The position numbers and the translations under genes were made by a program. A DNA stretch of 64,000 nt, from assembly GCA_020536535.1 (NCBI GenBank), contig JAHLWZ010000711.1, forward strand, positions 1-64,000, given 5' to 3'. A model generated the notes under the pieces. It was given only the letters and a program-made list of their open reading frames with translations, did not search any database and was not told where the DNA came from. Source of the DNA: Pelomyxa schiedti (taxonomy: Eukaryota; Protista; Evosea). Below are positions 4,254-17,884 of the stretch, piece by piece (positions within the stretch are counted from its first letter, which is position 1; each line of letters opens with the position of its first letter).

Positions 4254-5489
4254 TTAGAGGGTGCTGGACACAATTTGGGAGATTCTTCCATTGTGGACTT
4301 CCAACAACAAAATGAGGATATTAGAGCTTTGCTCCCTGACTTCTATTGTGTCGGCAGTTACTACAAACAGGTATCCATTCTCGGCTACAATCTGCTGCCA
4401 TTCAGGTACGCGGGTAACAACTTGAATAGGCCTGGTACTGTTGTCACTGTCCCAGATTTCTATGTTGTGGGTGTCAGACTTCTCAACAAGGAACCTTGAG
4501 GGACTGAGTTGCCATAGAGCTTCAGCAGGGCCTGAGATTACATTTGGAGTACCAGATATTTGGTAAACGTAACCAGCTGACCAGTCGTCGTTTAATGTTC
4601 TTATGAAGTAGGATTCTGGTTTGGAGCAAATATACCCATTGGCAAAGTAATAGTCATCTGCTCCATACCACCAGCGTACATTCTTTACAATTACGGCTTG
4701 GGTTCTGCTGGTCGCATCCATGTCCACAAGATAAAACAACAGTGGAGCATCCTGGACAACTTTAACAACAAGAACAGCTTGGTTCTGAGCTGTTGAATTG
4801 AAGAAGATGGAGGCTTCAAGAAAGGCAGTGGGAAGCTCAGTCATTTTCCCGTTATACAAAAAGGCTGAACCATGTTCTGTGGCAGTGTTGTTGCTGAGGT
4901 TTCCAAGAGTAATCTTTCTCATATTCCAGTCATACAGCATAATCCACCTAGCATTAGCCCCATACACCACAGTGTCCAAAGACTCCCTCAATGCCTCCCA
5001 TTGGCGCCCAGATATGAGATCAGAAACCCAGAAGTTGTGCCTGCCGCCCCCAGCGCGCTTTTTATGGGCTCCCACAATAGCATCGCGCTCCACCCCAGCC
5101 AAGCTGTCATAAAGTACCGGCGGGTTGATTCGTTCCAGCCCTATGGTGCCGAGTGTGCCACTGACGCCAAACTTGACGAGCTTCACCGCCCGCTGCCCCA
5201 TCCTGCCCCTGCTCAGCGACAGACAGAATAACTTGGTGCCGGCGCAGATGGTGCCCCACAGCATCCTGGAGAGGAACCCATTGTCCGCGAAGGTGCGGAC
5301 AAGGGGGCACCGCGCGCCGCAGCGCGGGACGGCGGCGGCGAGGAACGCGCGCATCTGCGCCACCGCCGCGGTGCTGTGGGCGATGATGGTTGTCGGCGGC
5401 GCTGCGTCGCGGCGAGCGTTTGGGCCCGCCTTCTTCCTCCCCTTTGTGACTCGCGGCTTCTTTTGCGGCGGTTGCGGTACACCACTCAT
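4254..5489 (-). CDS. Intronless 411-aa hypothetical protein: basic N-terminus, AFL...PRCG motif, beta-rich C-terminal region
   Basis: Single long ORF with a GC-rich 5' end; NLS-like KKPRVTKGRKK; AQMRAFLAAAVPRCGARCPL; C-terminal short beta-strand-like segments (FLVEKS...IEIWDS, YLFVVTADTIEVRE). Confidence 0.8.
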   Translation of the reverse strand: MSGVPQPPQKKPRVTKGRKKAGPNARRDAAPPTTIIAHSTAAVAQMRAFLAAAVPRCGARCPLVRTFADNGFLSRMLWGTICAGTKLFCLSLSRGRMGQRAVKLVKFGVSGTLGTIGLERINPPVLYDSLAGVERDAIVGAHKKRAGGGRHNFWVSDLISGRQWEALRESLDTVVYGANARWIMLYDWNMRKITLGNLSNNTATEHGSAFLYNGKMTELPTAFLEASIFFNSTAQNQAVLVVKVVQDAPLLFYLVDMDATSRTQAVIVKNVRWWYGADDYYFANGYICSKPESYFIRTLNDDWSAGYVYQISGTPNVISGPAEALWQLSPSRFLVEKSDTHNIEIWDSDNSTRPIQVVTRVPEWQQIVAENGYLFVVTADTIEVREQSSNILILLLEVHNGRISQIVSSTL

Positions 5490-5761
5490 CTATCTACTAC
5501 GTGCTTAATTGCGACTCGGTGTCCCTTGGTTTTTTTTTTTTTTTTGTTGCAAAAAACAAACATCTTTAAATGTTCTCTAATTAGCGACAATCTTAAAACA
5601 ATTTTGGACATGGAGAACGCAATTGTGTTCGTTTGAATTTCGAAAAGCTTAGATCGGGAAGGTGCGGCAAACACGCCAATCCTGGACGACGATTCTCAAG
5701 ACTCAGAGTTCCGGTCTGTTGAACTCAAAAAGTTCCTTTCGTACCTTTCGTATCTGTGGGG

Positions 5762-7573
5762 ATGGACGATTTGTTTAGCGGCGAAGGTGGCGAAGGTGGG
5801 AGATGTGAGCACTGCGACCAGGCAAGCCTAAGGCGCGAAAATCTCAGAGGAAAGTTTCGTGTTTTTTGTGTAAGTGGCCTACGTAACGTGAACATGACAC
5901 GCTTCCCACACAGATCTGTGCCGAGATCCCCCCGTATTGCAATCAAAACTGAGCGTGTGCAGTGTATGCGCGTGCGGTGGTGCCGACGTATGGATCTGCG
6001 TAACTTGCGGGGAGTCTTTTTGCGCTCCGAGTACCTACGCCCATCTCAATTCCCACGTGACCGCTACGATGACTGAAGCGAGCGGAGTTCACGCCATTTA
6101 TTGTTTGCCGTCAACTATGTACCAGGAGCCTGTGTATTGCCATTTCCGCTGCTTCGTGTGCTGCAAAAGCGTCAACTGTGAGGTATCTATCTTGCTAATG
6201 TGGCTGAAATGCGTATCTTGATGTTCATCCCTATTTGTGCGGTGTGGCAACTGTGTACCCGTGTGTCTCTTAGGTATTGGAGAGTATGAGTTCTTTACTT
6301 TTGGATATTGTGCCAAATTGGAAACCACTTCCCCAAAAACTGGATGGAGACATGGAATATGATGAAGCCAAATTCCGGGAGTCTCTTGCTCCTAGAACCT
6401 CAGTCTGTAGTGTAGGGAAAACCTCATTCCTAGTTTTTCATTCGCCTTCTGGCATTTTTTTGTTCTCATTCAAACAAGAATTTCATGGCAGAACCAAAAC
6501 ATACTCTTCTTTGGATGACAGGTCAGGCTCCTGTTCCTGGCCCTTTGGGTCAGCCTGAATTCATCTTGAAGGACAGAAAGTCTTATGAAAACAGACAGGT
6601 GGTTCGGCAGTCACTAAGTTTTTGTATTCAGTCACTTGGCATACAACCACAAACCTTGTTGTATGTATCAAATATGGGAAGGGGTGCTGATGTCTTCGGT
6701 GTCATTCCTGCAACCTCACTTGAATTCTCAACACACAATGAGGGTATTTTGTGCATTGTCTATTCAGCACTCCTCTTTTCCTCACTCTACATAGTTGTTG
6801 TTATAGGCGCCCATTGTGATAGCGTGTCTTGCCCTGGTGCCGATGATAATGGCAGTGGTATCCATACTGTTTTCCCTCTTCATTGTTCACACCGTTTTTA
6901 AAGGTAGTGCTGCTGTTCTACAGATCGCAGATGCTGTTGTTCGTATGAGAATACGTACGGTACCTCTCAGCCTGTAGTTTATCCTTCTCCAACAGTTTGG
7001 CGTAGCGTGCCACCTTGATTGTATTTTTTGACCAAGAGGAGTGTGGACTCGTTGGAAGTCGTTACTTTGCCAGGTAGGTGGACATTTTGTTGTTATTCCA
7101 ACTTTTCATGAAGATTTTTGCATAAAGTGGAAGCGTTGTCAAAAATCCATAGTGTTCACACAGTTGATATGATTGGGTATCTTTCTTTTTTTTTTTGGAT
7201 ATTTCCAATGGTTGAACCAAGATACAACTATAAGTGGCAGATAGCTCTGTTCAACCCACACCCGGATCTTATAGAGATGTATACACACACCTACGCGGAG
7301 CAGGACCCAAGACTTAAAGTTTTACCCCACACACTCGCCGGAATTTCTGACTTCCTCAGCTTTCCTGGTGTGCCATTATTCCCTTTTCAACATGCTCACA
7401 CCCCTCCAGATTTTGTATGCACTGGCCTAGGAGAGCCCAAGCTTGACTCCGGCACCGTCTCCAATCCCAATCACCACAAGCCAACTGACACCATCGAGAC
7501 CATTGACTTTGACTACCTGCATGCCAACATTTCCCTTGTGTTAGCTGTGGTATCGTCCCTTCTCGCACCCTGA
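5762..7573 (+). CDS. Putative zf-UBP zinc finger - M28 metallopeptidase fusion protein (multi-exon)
   Basis: N-terminal CEH...CSVC...VWICVTCGESFC...HLNSH...H...VYCHFRC (zf-UBP pattern). In-frame introns at 6183-6273 and about 6403/6412-6478 lead into the M28 domain with GAHCDS, PGADDNGSG, FFDQEECGLVGS, VDMIG and NHHKPTDTIETIDF. The first intron donor is ambiguous. Confidence 0.75.
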
Positions 7574-7757
7574 AGATTTTGTACGAGATTTTATATGTGG
7601 TAACCTCTAAAAAAAAACCCATATGAACACATTGCACCTCTTTAAGTCCCATTTGCCAACTGACATTGTACTGGATAGAGCACACGCAGTACCAACATCT
7701 CATTAAAATCTTAAATTTTCGGCCTTTGAACCACAAATTCTAATAGATTGGTGATTG

Positions 7758-9038
7758 ATGAGCGGCGGAGCGGTGCCGACGTCGTCAGGGAATGCAGCGG
7801 CCACCACAACAACTACATCGACGACGACTACAACGTCCTCTTCGGCGGTTGCGAGGCCCCCGCCGCCGAAATTAATTATGGCACGGACGGTGGGAAAGCC
7901 AAAAAAGAGGAGGGGCTCCGTGTGGCTGGGAAAAGTCCCAAAATACCTACTGGAAGGTACTGCACGGCGTTTGTTATATCTTGAACCAATCTTCTCTAAG
8001 TCTCATTGTCCACACTAAACTAAAACTACAATTTGTTTGAATAAGAGTGGAAACAACTGGACCAGGGGAAACCGTTGGGATATTTGAGGTGCCCAAAGCC
8101 TGGTACAGCAGCTTATTCGGAGTTGGAACATGCTACTGCATCCGCTGATGTGAGATTTGACCCTGCTGCGCCAAAGCCGCCACCTGGATTGTCCGTGAAA
8201 GGCGAACCGAATTATGGGACATCTTCCATGAACGAAGACACTTCAACAGATGTCACTTTCTTCAGGTCATTTGGCATTTATTGAGTTTGAAGTTAGGTTC
8301 AAAAGTATTATGTGGAAATGCCTGGGCAAAGAAAATTTCCTGTCACTTTGGTACCTTTGACGGTTCCCACATATGTATTATTGGAGACTGCGAGAGGTAG
8401 AATAGTTACCCCTTTTGAAAGGAAAACACACCTAACAACGAAAATAGGTGAATTTTGCTTGGAAGGCATCGTGGACAAAAGGTGTGATATTCAGACTTCC
8501 ACCCTGGACGAAGCAAGCCGCTTTTGCCGGGAAAGGAAAGAGAAATTATTTGAGAGAGCACACAATCCCTTAAAGTCATCAATACGAATTTCTACGGATG
8601 ATATCAAGCCTGGCCATACTGAGATAAGATTAATCGATACCATCCCTACTGTGAGTAATCCAAAACAAAATACCAAACCAAGTCACATGCATTCAGCCTG
8701 AAAAGGAAAAAGGAGACAGGAATGCGCGCATGGAATATAACGCACTTGTTGAGTATGGCAACTCCCTTGAATATGTTTACTCTTAACAAACACATTTTAG
8801 GATTTTGTTTCACCTGTTTGAAGAGAAGCCAAACTGGGATGTTGCTACTTTAGCGGCAAAAACTGAACAACCCAAGGTACCGCTGTGTACAGTTAACGGC
8901 CTTTCCCTAACTGAGAATTCACAGGCCTATGTCAAGGAGGTACTTTCGAATATCGGTGATTATGTGAAGTCGGGAGTGTCCCGTGGAACCTACCAGCTCA
9001 AACCACAGTACGCAGTGCACAAACCATCCAGCAGCTAG
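7758..9038 (+). CDS. GTF2F2: Transcription initiation factor IIF beta subunit (RAP30)
   Basis: N-terminal RGSVWLGKVPKYLLE motif; C-terminal winged helix MFHLFEEKPNW...TEQP..AYVKEVLSNIG...GTYQLKPQY; intron-split. Confidence 0.9.
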
Positions 9039-12227: not shown

Positions 12228-15200
12228 TTATCTTCTGCCTTTTTTTTGTAGTCTTCTGCTCTTTACTGTTTGAGGGGCCTTTCTTGTCCTTGGGCGTTTT
12301 CTGGATGGTGGCTTGAAATCGCTACTGCTGTCATTCCCGTCGGCCTCTGTACTGCTGCTGTCATTGGAGGTGCTGCTGGATGATCCGCTTGAAGAGCGCG
12401 AGGGCTTCCGCCTAACCCGGCTTGTTTGTCGGCGTGGTTTCGTTGCCCTCTTGGTTACGGTGGTAGGGGTATAATCAGAGCTTGAGGTGTTGTCACTTGA
12501 ACTTGAGCTTGCACTTGGTGGGTCACGCCTGGCTTGCTTTCTCCCTCCTCTGGGCTTGCTCTTTGTGGGAGCTTCGCATCTTTTGGGTGCAGGATCCTTT
12601 TTATTGGTGGTACTGGCAGCTCTACTGTGTATAGTTTTGTCTGGAGGATGTTTTCCAACATCACTGTCACTACTGTCACTTTCGCTTCCACTGTTGCTCT
12701 CACTGTCACTTTCGCTTCCACTGTCAGAAATATCTATTCCACTTGAAGACTCACTTTCTGACTCACTGCTATCGGGAGACTCCCCACTAATTGGTGGTGG
12801 CCCATCACATTTTTTGTAAAAGAATATGTAGCCACATTGAGACGCATTTGCCATAACCTGGTCGAGCTGGACCACAGTAGCATAGGCGTCATTGAAGTGG
12901 ACCCACTCGCCTGGAACAATGTCAACACTCAATACTTCAAGCAGGCTTGCCACTCTTACCTGCCGAGTGACAGTAGCACGTGTAGTGCCCTTGGGAAGTT
13001 CCTCGGCCTTCATGTATTATTACCCCACACAGCTCATAAAATGGGAGGCTTGAAGCGGATGTTGCGGGTTCTCCGGGATGAAATCTCGATGTATTCAGTA
13101 TAAACGGGAACTTCACAGCAGTAAATATTTTCCTTTTTGAAGTACGGAGCCATTCGAAGCGTTTGAGAACCACACACATTATCTGGAGAAGGTAAGTGGC
13201 AACCCAATATATGATTCATATTGCCTGTGGGAACTTTTGAATAGCCAGTTGTTTTGTGAATTTGGCTCGCTGCTTGCAGTTGTCACACCGCCACTTATCG
13301 GCGAGTAATTCCTTTTTGTAAAAACTCTTGAAGCACTTGATCAGAGACGATGAGGTGCCCTTGTTGGCTTTAGTGCCACGAGGCTGAACCTTTGTCCTTG
13401 AAGTCCGCCAGTTCTGGTTTGTTGTGGGAATATTCAAGGACAAATCTAAGAAGTGATCCTCCTTGCCTGAGGTGTGGCTGCACCTACTGCATGTAATCTG
13501 GTTAGTGTAAATGTGACTTTGTATCCAAAAAAAGAAAATACAACAAAAAAACTATGAAGGTCGAAATCACAAAAACGAAAATAATAATGAGTTGTACTGT
13601 TGAAATCAATGTGCCATCGAACAAATCAGTGACGGGGTAAGACGTTGATTTGACGTTCTTTGGTAATGCCTTGACAAGTTTTTCATACTCGGTACTAAGT
13701 TGGTCAAACAAATACACCAGAAACTCCTGGGCATCCTGAAGGGTTTATAAGTGGGGGGCAACCAAGAGGGGATACTTGTTGTTTATAGCTTCGGAATCGA
13801 GGAACAAACTTCCAGAGTGATTCCACAAAAGCCATTGGACTAACAACATTCCATTTTCCGGATTTCATGACTCGTAGTAGTTCGTGTAGTTGTTGACTGA
13901 GTGTCCTTGTTTAAAGAATGAGACTTAGGTTTGAGCAAGTGTGATACTTGTTGGATTTATAGTGGTCTCGTACTGACTGGAAACAGTCTACTGTGTCCCT
14001 TCTTACCAGTACGTTTGGAGAGGGATTGTATTTTGTATTTATGAAATAGTGTTGAAATTCGTCCAAGCATCTGGAAGTGGTGATGATACAGAAGGTAGAA
14101 TTGTCGTCATCATACGCTACAGACTGTAAAACACTGTTTATGAAGCACGTATTGCCGAGGTTTCTGAGACCAGTATGACGCGAAAGAACCACTTGGCGGG
14201 GGAGTGCCCGCCTGTTGGAGGATGTTGTTGGTGAAGGAGATATTTCTGGGACTTTTGAGGAGGCCACATGGTGTGGAGGGGTACTGGAACCTGAAACTGA
14301 CGCAGGAGGTGGAGTTTTCTTACGATTCGCAAATACCCTCCAAATAGACAATACTTTATGAAGGAGGCTTCGAGAATAGTGTTTGCGAGAAAGTGCGGTC
14401 TTGTCTTTCAACACAAATCTACACCAAGGTCAGGAACGGAATTTTACTATCAACTTCGTTACTTTTCTTCTGAATGCTGAAACACGGAAACTGTCCTCAA
14501 AAGACTGGGTGAGGCATCATCTGCAACTCTATGATTTTGTAAGGTGACATATAATAACGTATGACAACTTGATGGAACTGGAAGCAACAGCTTGAGTTTT
14601 GGAGAGGGATGATACTAGAGCACCAATAGAAGTGGAGGCTAGTTCCGTGTGTGGCGTGGTACTATTACAGGCGAAGCTGTAAATATTCAAGATAAGAGAC
14701 GTCAATAATTAAGAAATTGTGGAGTGAGGCAACCAGTGGCAATTCCACAGATTGATATTCAGTACCAGAGGGTGCTGCGGATGTAAGAAGAACGAAGGCA
14801 ATCAAAATGCATACAGAAGTTTCCTTGAAGTGTTCGTAGGCATGTCCATTTGGACTAAAGAAAGGAAGTTGGAAAAGACGAAAAAGATATGGTGAAGGGA
14901 GTAGTAACCTCAAACAACAAGAAATTGAGCCACAATCCAAACAGCCACAAATACTATCTGTTGTACGACAACCTTAAAAAAAAAAAAAAGGAAAATTTAA
15001 TGGGGGAGTAAAGCCCAAAAGGAAAAACGAACTTTGACAAAGCCATTTGGACGGGTTCAACAACTTTCGCGTAACAACCTCCAACACGGAGGCACTCTTG
15101 AAGTGCAGGCACGGCGTTGAAGCGGAGCCCGATGTCGTTGTGGTAGTTGTTGTTTCTGTACGTGTGGGTGCGTGCAGGGTTTCCGTCTCCCCTTGTTGAT

Positions 15201-15264
15201 CCTCTAGATCTACATCCACAAGATCTGCCGCTGTGACGGGCGAGTGGTCCGGTGTGTCTACCAT
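12228..15264 (-). CDS. Ubiquitin-specific protease (USP3/USP44/49-like) with N-terminal zf-UBP and Ser/basic low-complexity tail
   Basis: PCLHF...LLNPSKWLCQ / CLDCGSISC...HAYEHF (zf-UBP); Cys box GLRNLGNTCFINSVLQSV; QDAQEFL; His box YELCGVIIHEG...GHYTCYC. Confidence 0.92.
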
Positions 15265-15463
15265 CCAACACGAACGCAGTTGCACAAAAAAGGAAAGGAA
15301 AAATGAAATGAAAACCAAGCGGCAAACATCAGGAAGGAAGGATCTCTGCCAGGGACACAATGATGGTGTTTCTCTCGGCGCAGCACTCACAGTCCGAGGG
15401 TAGCACAGTGTCTCTTGGGGAATCATCAGATCCGAGACAAGTTGGTACCAAGAATTCGGCGAC
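15265..15463. promoter_or_regulatory. Probable bidirectional promoter/5' UTR region between USP and PAF1
   Basis: Head-to-head predicted ATGs about 200 bp apart; no specific promoter element identified. Confidence 0.4.
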
Positions 15464-17884
15464 ATGGAACCGGGCCAGGCAGCGACACCTACCCCACAGA
15501 GCACGGGCTCGGCCCCCGGCACTGGCAGCCCCGATCCCGCGGTGCCAGCGGTAGCCGTTGCGCCCCAACAGCTCCCTCCTACTCCGCAGCCGCAGCCCCA
15601 ACAGCCCGCCGAAGCCGCCGCGGCAGTCGCCACCTCCACCTCCACAACCACTCCCTCTAGTTCCATCATCAGCACCACCACTACAACCACCAGCAGTGCC
15701 TCCACAGCGCAGAGCGCGGCGGCCCCCTCGCCGCCGTCGCTCCCGGCCGCCCCGCCTGCCCCGTCACCTTCGCCATCGCCTCTGCCGCCTCCTGCCCCTA
15801 CATCGACCCCTACCCCCACGCCCACGCCCACGCCCACCGCCGCCCCTGCGACGACAACCACAGCCACGACTACCGCCACCACAACGACGTCAAGCGTGGG
15901 GGATAACGCCACCCCCAGCAGCAGCAGTAGCACCAAGGGCGGGGAGCCCGCTGCCCCACCGCAATCACACCACAGACAGCAGCAGCCACCACCACCACCA
16001 CAACAGCAGGCACACAGCCATCACCATCACCAGGCGCCCCCGGCTCACAAAGGCAGTGGTAGCAGTAGCAGTAGCGGTGGCGGTGGCGGCGGTGGTGTGG
16101 GAGGCACGGGAGGAGAGAGAGGGGAGAGACGTCACAGCCAATCTGCCCACCCCTCCTCCGCCACATTGTCCTCGTCATCGCATAAGGCGTCTTCTTCTGC
16201 TCCGGCGTCGTCTACAGCGACGGCAGCGGCCCCGTCTGTTGGAAAGATTTTACCCGAGTGTGTATCTCTGTATCTTTTATGATGTGTTCTATTTATGCTT
16301 ACTGGATCTAAAAAAAAAAAAAAAAGATCAAAGTTGAACCCTAAGGAAGACTTAATTTGTCCACAGCACTACTTGAACCGTTTGCCGGATTTACCTTTTG
16401 ATCCAAAACGGCTCATTTCCTCTTTTGACCCAAACATGTAATTCTCTATTTAGTTATGCCTTGCTTTTTTTTGTGGATGACAATAGGTTTCAGGTTTGTG
16501 AAATACCACACTACATCCCTAGAGAAAACGTACAAGAGACCCCTCGTGTGTGCACCTGATGTTGGTGTCACCATAGATCTTCTAGATCCGCACTCCTTAT
16601 TAAATGCTCATCTCACATACAGTGTGTGTTGACTGGCTCGTTTACTAGGGTCTAATTTTTACGTTTAGATTCTCCCCTTGACCCTGAAGATGCTGCTATT
16701 TGTCCTCCAGAGTGAGTCTATTTCTACTCCCATCGATACCATATTGGAACGAGATCTGACAATTTGTGCCACAGAACACCGGAAATCGCCCAAGCAAAAC
16801 CCAAAATACCACCTTCCCCTTCTATGATTACTTCTTCTGGAGGGAGTTCTGCAGCCTCGCAAAAATCAAAATCTGCTCCCCACGTAACAGTGGAAGATCA
16901 GTCACGCAGGTTGGTATTTTTTTCCCTTTCTTGTTTTTTTTACATCACTTCAAGGCAACAACCTCAGGCAGAAAAACTGGATCTAGACGCCAAAATAAGG
17001 TAATGACATGGCCAATGGCTACACTAACAAGGATAGAATTATCGATGATACATTCAAAGCCATGGAGAACTTTAATCCAGTACACCCAACTGACCCTCAT
17101 CTCACTGTAGAAGAAGTGTATACCATAGTCCCTACTATCGCAATACCTGGTGTATCGTAAGTATACCTTTTGTTTGAAAACTTATTGTAACACTACTTAG
17201 ATACCAGCAGTTCGTTTTTGATGATGACCCTGCAACTTGTGACCTACCTGAAAACGATGACGAAGCATCCGCGGCAAGAACAATGCTCTCACATTCAGAA
17301 CTCCTAGAGACTGGCAGATTCCCGCTAATGAAGACGTTCACACCCGAAACAGAGTTACCTCCAAGCCAGCAAGTTGGCTACTTAGCACACATGGTACCGG
17401 CAACCAGAACTCAAACAGACCCTGAGGTTATAATCCCCCCCTTTTTTCACACCACTTATTGGTGGCAGGTTGATGAATATTCTTGGGTCAAGGAATATCA
17501 ATGGAAAGTGAAATCAGTTGGAACTGTATTGTCCCTTTTCGTTAAATAACGTTTGGGAAATGCTTAAACACACTCAAAAACCACGCAGAATATAATGATA
17601 TTCGTACTTGGGCCACCACCTCCACCCCTAAACATGGATAAAGTAATGGACCCTCTTATCACAACAGAGCAAATGGATGAGACCCCATTAGTGGTTCAGT
17701 ATCTGGGTCTATCCAAGAAAGTAGAAGTCAGCAAAGTAGCAAGAGTATGTACATACAAATCATCTTTCAAGTAACCAACAACACTCACATTATCCCATGA
17801 TAGACCAACCTGGAGAACTTGAGGCAACACCCTCGGCCAGAGAAAGTTGTGGTTCACCAGTGTAGCATGTCAGGATTCGTCTAG
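15464..17884 (+). CDS. PAF1: RNA polymerase II-associated factor 1 homolog with long Pro/Thr/Gln/His-rich N-terminus
   Basis: After the low-complexity exon: [35 protein letters not shown]...[11 protein letters not shown] and VEEVYTIVP match Paf1 motifs. The 3' end is approximate. Confidence 0.88.

Follow-up and report, generated by a model that had tools for sequence, protein, structure and literature searches.

ZnF-UBP zinc fingers occur together with deubiquitinases, HDAC6 and BRAP-type ligases and hold free C-termini. In USP5 (isopeptidase T) the finger binds the free C-terminus of ubiquitin, activating the enzyme; the fingers of Ubp8/USP22 and USP39/Sad1 no longer bind the ubiquitin tail and serve as scaffolds between proteins. 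M28 peptidases, a family that includes carboxypeptidases, are mostly secreted or luminal. Here we describe a gene that joins these two kinds of domain in the anaerobic archamoeba Pelomyxa schiedti. It lies at positions 5762-7573 (+) of a stretch of 64,000 nucleotides (nt), hereafter the window, taken from contig C711 of the 52.4-Mb assembly. We think it rather likely that the gene makes one cytosolic protein of 439 amino acids (aa), in which a ZnF-UBP finger of host origin, followed by a linker, targets or regulates a bacterial-type M28 aminopeptidase.

The spliced gene and its two domains

For the gene model, three reading frames were read and contigs of four public runs (X1-X4, one sample) were placed on positions 5200-8000. 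Runs X1-X3 gave unspliced, DNA-like sequence, and run X4 gave spliced, RNA-like contigs. The gene extends from an ATG at 5762, with an in-frame stop upstream of it at ~5720, to a TGA at 7571-7573, and its 10 exons sum to 1320 nt. All nine introns, both finger-to-peptidase introns among them, were seen as spliced joints in X4 contigs, and the X4 contigs listed span 5778-7576, overlapping wherever both neighbours are shown. The gene is one spliced, expressed mRNA, its full length pieced together from these overlapping contigs.

Exon 1 (5762-5849) encodes residues 1-29 and the first base of codon 30, and contains the first zinc ligands of the finger, C15-x-H17 (RCEHC, nt 5804-5812); one X4 contig joins 5778-5847 to 5912-6186. 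The intron between them, intron 1 (5850-5913, 64 nt; joint 5847>5912, side 70, depth 6), has non-canonical GA..AG ends. The joint slides by 1-2 nt, but no placement yields GT..AG and other ends are no better. A closely similar copy of the gene on contig C319, referred to below as the twin, keeps C-E-H-C in exon 1 and has the same GAAAGT...ACACAG ends in its intron 1 (L003 5969-6028). Reading through intron 1 leads to a frameshift in the window copy and to a stop in the twin, and its removal brings exon 1 with the C-x-H ligands in frame with the rest of the finger. A consensus GTAAGT donor at 5870, ~20 nt downstream of the GA donor, was rejected, as it runs into a stop in both copies.

The remaining eight introns are all GT..AG. 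Exon 2 (5914-6182) encodes the core of the finger, residues 30-119, and is followed at the finger/linker boundary by intron 2 (6183-6273, phase 0; joint 6180>6272, cut +2), whose junction between SVNCE and VLESM is identical in the deposited protein model P0009. Exon 3 (6274-6411) is a 46-aa linker corresponding to P0009 residues 39-84, and intron 3 (6412-6478, phase 0; joint 6411>6479, side 129) separates it from exon 4 (6479-6743), which encodes the N-terminal part of the M28 domain and in which bacterial M28 homology begins at KHTLLWMTG. Intron 4 (6744-6794; joint 6742>6794) is spliced to the acceptor at 6794, and an alternative acceptor at 6806 was rejected on the RNA. Exon 5 (6795-6857; VVVIGAHCDSVSCPGADDNGSG), defined by X4 joints, carries H260 (nt 6812-6814) and the bridging D271 (nt 6845-6847). 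After intron 5 (6858-6903; joint 6856>6903) come exon 6 (6904-6959; SAAVLQIADAVVRMRIRT), placed by X4 joints and the match to P0009, and intron 6 (6960-7005; X4 joint). Exon 7 (7006-7073; RATLIVFFDQEECGLVGSRYFA) contains the catalytic E304 and the zinc ligand E305 (nt 7036-7041) and gives a Pfam M28 match on its own. Intron 7 (7074-7113; joint 7071>7112) leads to exon 8 (7114-7176), which ends in IHSVHTVDMIG and carries the zinc ligand D334 (nt 7166-7168), and intron 8 (7177-7221; joint 7175>7221) to exon 9 (7222-7367), which reads YNYKWQ...SDFLSFP in an X4 contig and matches P0009. Intron 9 (7368-7409; joint 7366>7409, side 146) precedes exon 10 (7410-7573), which contains NPNHHKPTDTIETIDFDYL with the zinc ligand H408 (nt 7475-7477) and the stop codon. 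A first-pass annotation, made from the letters of the window alone, had given the same start and stop, proposed a single in-frame spliced mRNA with introns 2 and 3 and left the donor of intron 3 at 6403 or 6412. The X4 contigs bear out the mRNA and both introns, and P0009 shares the exon 2-10 junctions; the RNA uses 6412 and not 6403, and the seven other introns had not been listed.

The P. schiedti genome paper, which presents single-cell genome and Smart-seq2 transcriptome data, counts 7.4 introns per gene; of those annotated, 98.4% are GT-AG and 1.6% GC-AG, and one is GT-GG (PMC8887013). P0009 (358 aa) lacks exon 1 and begins at ATG 6069, within the finger, and P0007, the model of the twin, begins at another internal Met. 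In exons 3-10, and in exon 2 over its final 38 codons, the sequence matches P0009 piecewise and in order. Gene finders allowing only GT or GC donors cannot join exons 1 and 2, which is probably why both models are truncated, and the truncation has left the fusion invisible in databases. Given the missed GA..AG intron, further N-terminal domains may be hidden in the annotation of this genome.

The N-terminal ~119 residues are predicted to form a divergent three-zinc ZnF-UBP (BUZ) fold. Pfam zf-UBP (PF02148) matched exon 2 alone with 19.3 bits (E 0.0013, profile positions 1-51 of 63) and the finger of the twin with 19.7 bits. Every one of the 12 zinc-ligand positions is present (C15, H17, C45, C48, C58, C61, C66, H73, H77, H89, C109 and C112) and conserved in the twin, the C-x-H of exon 1 supplying the ligands that the three-zinc form of the finger requires. 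The 10 ligands of exon 2, together with the pocket residue W56, align with nine canonical Pelomyxa zf-UBP exons in every ligand column. An AF2 model of the finger (pLDDT 70.8) had ZnF-UBP domains as its top 13 matches in Foldseek and its top 18 in VIA-align (Z 5.3-6.9, root-mean-square deviation (rmsd) 2.1-3.2 Å over ~60 residues; next unrelated fold Z 4.5), including those of HDAC6, USP39, Ubp8, USP5 and USP49. By language-model atlas features, zf-UBP clusters were nearest (best score 0.94, 204 of 256 features in common), and zf-UBP appeared in 69 of 100 matches. In the pocket that holds the Gly-Gly of ubiquitin, C66-A-P-S stands in place of C-S/G-R-Y and F-R-C109-F(-V-C) in place of F-W-C-Y(-x-C). 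The window copy and the twin share four changes (Arg to Pro, Tyr to Ser, Trp to Arg and Tyr to Phe); of its pocket residues the window copy keeps only the first Trp, W56. An insert of 12 residues with an extra Cys precedes the last CxxC of the window finger.

The peptidase, residues ~166-439, is by sequence a complete co-catalytic two-zinc M28 domain. P0009, which covers the gene from the latter part of exon 2 to exon 10 and stood for its peptidase part, matched Peptidase_M28 (PF04389) with 90.1 bits (E 2e-25, profile positions 7-192 of 193; curated cut-off 21.3 bits). The metal ligands H260, D271, E305, D334 and H408 and the catalytic E304 (in P0009: H179, D190, E223/E224, D253 and H327) do not vary across an alignment that includes seven bacterial relatives, and D262 in exon 5 is likewise conserved. 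The nearest solved structures are the bacterial aminopeptidases 2EK8, YwaD (6HC6) and SGAP (1CP7), and the best NCBIfam model is aminopeptidase LapA, far under its equivalog cut-off. The exon 3 linker has no homology to bacterial M28 proteins and occupies the position of their signal peptide or lipobox; bacterial matches begin at about P0009 residue 90, in exon 4.

Among the exons and P0009, Pfam found zf-UBP and Peptidase_M28 only, and no UCH, histone-deacetylase or RING/BRAP2 domain. Comparison of the window gene with the twin gave a ratio of nonsynonymous to synonymous substitution rates (dN/dS) of 0.18 in the finger exons and of 0.14 in those of the M28 domain, indicating that both domains are under purifying selection. 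Taking these ratios with the Pfam E values, the sequence match to both domains is beyond chance. The first-pass annotation's other readings of the protein also hold. Its zf-UBP-type finger, though divergent, agrees with the Pfam match, the ligand alignment, the language-model neighbours and the structure prediction it had called for. The loss of the Gly-Gly-binding Arg, FCAP replacing C-(G/S)-R, is seen in the alignment with canonical Pelomyxa fingers. The motifs AHCD, GADD, EE, DMIG and HHKPTD, on which it had called the M28 domain intact, are all present and do not vary in the alignment with bacterial M28 relatives, and the N-terminus, MDDLFSGEGGEGG, reads as having no signal peptide.

A paralogue family and the bacterial affinity of the peptidase

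By sequence, the P. schiedti genome contains four finger and M28 genes, which lie on C711 (the window), C319, C720 and C1006. The C319 twin matches the window at 93% identity over 5761-7953 and no further, the sequences on either side being unrelated. It has the same ten exons and the same GA..AG intron, with an 18% nucleotide difference in exon 1. An X4 variant contig with 8 differences over 6578-6730 probably derives from the C319 copy, which would then be expressed too. Considered as an allele, the C319 copy was set aside: since the shared stretch ends within unrelated flanks, it was treated as a dispersed duplicate, and in a single-cell assembly it may also reflect an assembly error. The synonymous divergence (dS) between the twins is uneven, being highest in the finger exons (0.37), lower in the M28 exons (0.12) and lowest in the linker exon (0.04), on small site counts; gene conversion across the 3' part could account for this.

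The gene on C1006 (G000:C1006:13100-14820, L004 1630-3320, minus strand) encodes a finger and a full M28 domain with all ligands, and no deposited protein for it was found among the relatives of P0009. Its finger is canonical, with 45.8 bits through its intron and 44.7 bits for the second exon alone against PF02148, above the cut-off of 22.7; by sequence, the second finger exon matched USP49 at 2e-10 and HDAC6 at 1e-7. It reads MQACSH...CRGC...WLCLTC...ACSR/WHQGHALRHFEETGHPL...IWCYLCDDF, and CSRW and IWCYLC retain the Arg, an aromatic residue and W-C-Y of the ubiquitin-tail pocket, leaving the pocket intact. The gene on C720 (G000:C720:27880-29660, L095 2380-4160, minus strand) has an M28 domain 49% identical to P0009. 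Upstream it carries a finger-like CDLC...ELWVCLDCGINFCSICAVKH...GWCFAC that gives only a weak profile match and in which CSI replaces CSR and WCFAC is retained; also upstream is a long N-terminal stretch of low complexity that includes ACPH. The C1006 and window genes have four introns in common in both position and phase, before VVVIGAH (phase 1), before RA.. (phase 0), after DMIG (phase 2) and after SDF..F (phase 1), and the alignment of the C720 gene breaks at the positions of window introns 5, 6, 7 and 8. Since the bacterial relatives have no spliceosomal introns and the paralogues have intron positions in common, this pattern suggests a single fusion before the duplications.

Among the 120 matches listed for the peptidase, all named relatives from outside Pelomyxa are bacterial M28 proteins (213-526 aa), with up to 41% identity, and none of the 120 has PF02148. 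A signal peptide or lipobox was found in all eight bacterial relatives examined, 190 bacterial loci encode relatives at 27-38% identity, and the nearest atlas clusters of the M28 part are all prokaryotic. A search of the P. schiedti genome with P0009 returned only the four fusion loci, as against 45 Pfam M28 places in that genome. In a tree of 82 M28 sequences, the Pelomyxa pair stands on a branch 2.5 long and is joined to no bacterial group. Contamination is excluded by the nine spliced introns. A bacterial origin of the M28 domain by lateral transfer is probable on this distribution. The finger points elsewhere for its source: a local profile scan of 80 bacterial M28 loci (gene and up to 2.5 kb on each side) found no finger, and the C1006 finger has the C-S-R signature in common with the amoeba's own zf-UBPs, which together suggest that the finger came from the host.

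The most economical history needs a single transfer, the gain of introns and a single fusion, with the duplications coming afterwards. In it, the amoeba would have acquired an M28 aminopeptidase gene laterally from a bacterium; this gene would have lost its signal peptide, gained introns and fused, once, with an endogenous ZnF-UBP exon, and would then have duplicated in the order C1006, C720 and finally C711/C319. With its signal peptide lost, introns gained and a eukaryotic signalling domain attached, the gene is a clear candidate for a domesticated bacterial gene.

Searches for the fusion elsewhere used separate exons and P0009 as queries. The finger exon returned eight matches among 1.84 billion representative proteins and no orthologue outside Pelomyxa, a weak negative, since a single-sequence search with so diverged a finger does not reach even canonical zf-UBPs. 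Seven of the eight were multi-stretch matches (the three examined were Cys-rich or tandem repeats) and the eighth was P0007. In full-text literature no paper paired zf-UBP with M28, and ZnF-UBP appeared with an aminopeptidase only in unrelated reviews; the prokaryotic atlas clusters nearest the M28 part held no such combination. The first-pass annotation had known of no such fusion, and none was found in the papers, protein collections, atlas clusters and bacterial loci searched. The architecture appears to be new and made from known parts, its absence elsewhere being unproven.

Possible roles of the finger

In the reading that we favour, the M28 domain would be an active zinc aminopeptidase in the cytosol, and the finger its targeting or regulatory module. 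The first-pass annotation had put forward ubiquitin, ubiquitin-like or histone-type ligands as putative targets of such a cytosolic exopeptidase. The ancestral-looking C1006 copy, with its intact pocket, probably recognizes unanchored ubiquitin, or a ubiquitin-like protein, by its free C-terminal Gly-Gly, perhaps with a USP5-like activation by tail binding. In the window copy and the twin the altered pocket predicts that canonical Gly-Gly binding has probably been lost, and the finger of the window copy, still conserved, more likely binds a different tail or partner. The presence of four copies, the expression of the window gene, purifying selection on both domains and one intact ubiquitin-tail pocket suggest use and not accident.

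Several points weigh against this reading. The window finger, at 19.3 bits, falls below the PF02148 curated cut-off of 22.7, and a phmmer search of the PDB with finger exon 2 found no ZnF-UBP, returning chance matches only (E >0.1). The AF2 finger model is of medium confidence and its alignment contained canonical fingers, so that its fold match is not fully independent. Intron 1, with its non-canonical ends, was seen in a single contig of a single run, and the full-length mRNA was inferred from overlapping X4 contigs and not from one long cDNA. The case for lateral transfer draws on distribution and not on nesting within bacteria, the tree pointing to no donor.

A real fusion whose finger, in the window copy, binds no tail at all is a less likely but serious alternative; the finger would be a structural zinc module that holds a partner or packs on the peptidase, as in Ubp8/USP22 and USP39/Sad1. 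The four changed pocket positions fit such a module, as does the persistence of purifying selection, and USP39 (6ah0_W, Z 6.6) and Ubp8 (Z 6.1-6.3) stand beside HDAC6 among the top fold matches. Fold matches within 1 Z are tied, though, and cannot separate binding from non-binding fingers, and the Arg in the position of the former pocket Trp could still hold a carboxylate.

More speculatively, and with rather low probability, the family may consist of tail-guided aminopeptidases, in which the ZnF-UBP reads a free C-terminus and positions or allosterically activates an M28 exopeptidase of bacterial origin. Unanchored ubiquitin, through its Gly-Gly, would be the target of the canonical copy, and the diverged copies, the window copy among them, would have gained new C-terminal specificities. 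If true, this would constitute a new effector arm of the ubiquitin system that is not a deubiquitinase, and a natural coupling of C-terminus recognition to N-terminal trimming.

It is very improbable that the finger exons are a 5' untranslated region and that the protein starts at the internal Met of ATG 6069 as a plain M28 peptidase. The public models P0009 and P0007 do begin at internal Met codons, and intron 1 is non-canonical and was seen in a single contig. Yet the frame is open from ATG 5762 through the observed splice, and all 12 ligands are kept in both twins despite the 18% nucleotide difference in exon 1, with a dN/dS of 0.18. An internal start would also leave half a zinc finger on the enzyme, and fingers stand at the same place in the C1006 and C720 genes. 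Given that no GA-AG is found among the annotated introns (PMC8887013), the pipeline probably missed intron 1, which would explain the truncation. Equally hard to credit is an M28 carboxypeptidase aimed by the finger at free ubiquitin or ubiquitin-like C-termini and trimming the tail that it holds: M28 carboxypeptidases and C-terminus-holding ZnF-UBPs are generally known, and the first-pass annotation had proposed a trimming of termini, but the nearest solved or curated relatives (2EK8, YwaD, SGAP and LapA) are all aminopeptidases, a tail buried in the finger pocket cannot simultaneously reach a second active site, and the window copy is without a Gly-Gly pocket.

Neighbouring features and comparison with known systems

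The window also contains an ordinary ubiquitin-specific protease at 13911-14970 (-), with a zf-UBP match at 14797-14970 (24 bits) followed by a UCH Cys-box exon (GLRNLGNTCFINS), which represents the standard host of zf-UBP in this genome. Divergent from the finger gene lies an intronless open reading frame of 411 aa (4254-5489, -) with no Pfam match, and a T(17) run lies at ~5530-5546 in the 270 nt that separate them. The region 15000-16300 is very GC-rich and of low complexity (GC 0.62 over 15001-16000), and its long open frames on both strands encode Ala/Pro/Thr/Gly-rich repeats.

Compared with the bacterial M28 enzymes, Aneurinibacillus AM-1 (2EK8), Bacillus YwaD (6HC6), Streptomyces SGAP (1CP7) and Legionella LapA, the window protein has the same metal and catalytic residues. 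The bacterial relatives examined have signal peptides or lipoboxes and no finger, whereas the window gene has nine spliceosomal introns, an N-terminal ZnF-UBP and no signal peptide, and the conserved TDH motif of the bacterial relatives is SDF in the window protein.

On the side of the finger, the fold matches to Ubp8/USP22 and USP39/Sad1 are tied with that to HDAC6 (Z 6.1-6.6), and the changes in the window copy's pocket likewise point to a finger of this kind; the fingers of those proteins, in contrast, sit in USP or USP-like proteins of large complexes. The HDAC6 BUZ domain ranks first among the fold matches (3phd_C, Z 6.9, rmsd 2.8 Å over 62 residues), and what we take to be its three-zinc spacing, C-x-H...CxxC...CxxC-x4-C-x6-H-x3-H...H...CxxC, matches the window finger. 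The window finger differs from it in being N-terminal, in having a peptidase and not a deacetylase as its partner domain, in the change of CGRY to CAPS, and in the 12-residue insert with its extra Cys. USP5 resembles the window protein in having a ZnF-UBP N-terminal to a hydrolase in one chain (2g45, Z 5.9; 3ihp, Z 5.3). The hydrolase of the window protein is a two-zinc, bacterial-type M28 domain and not a USP cysteine protease, and the Arg, Tyr and Trp of the pocket are gone; for the C1006 copy, USP5 provides a model of how the protein might work.

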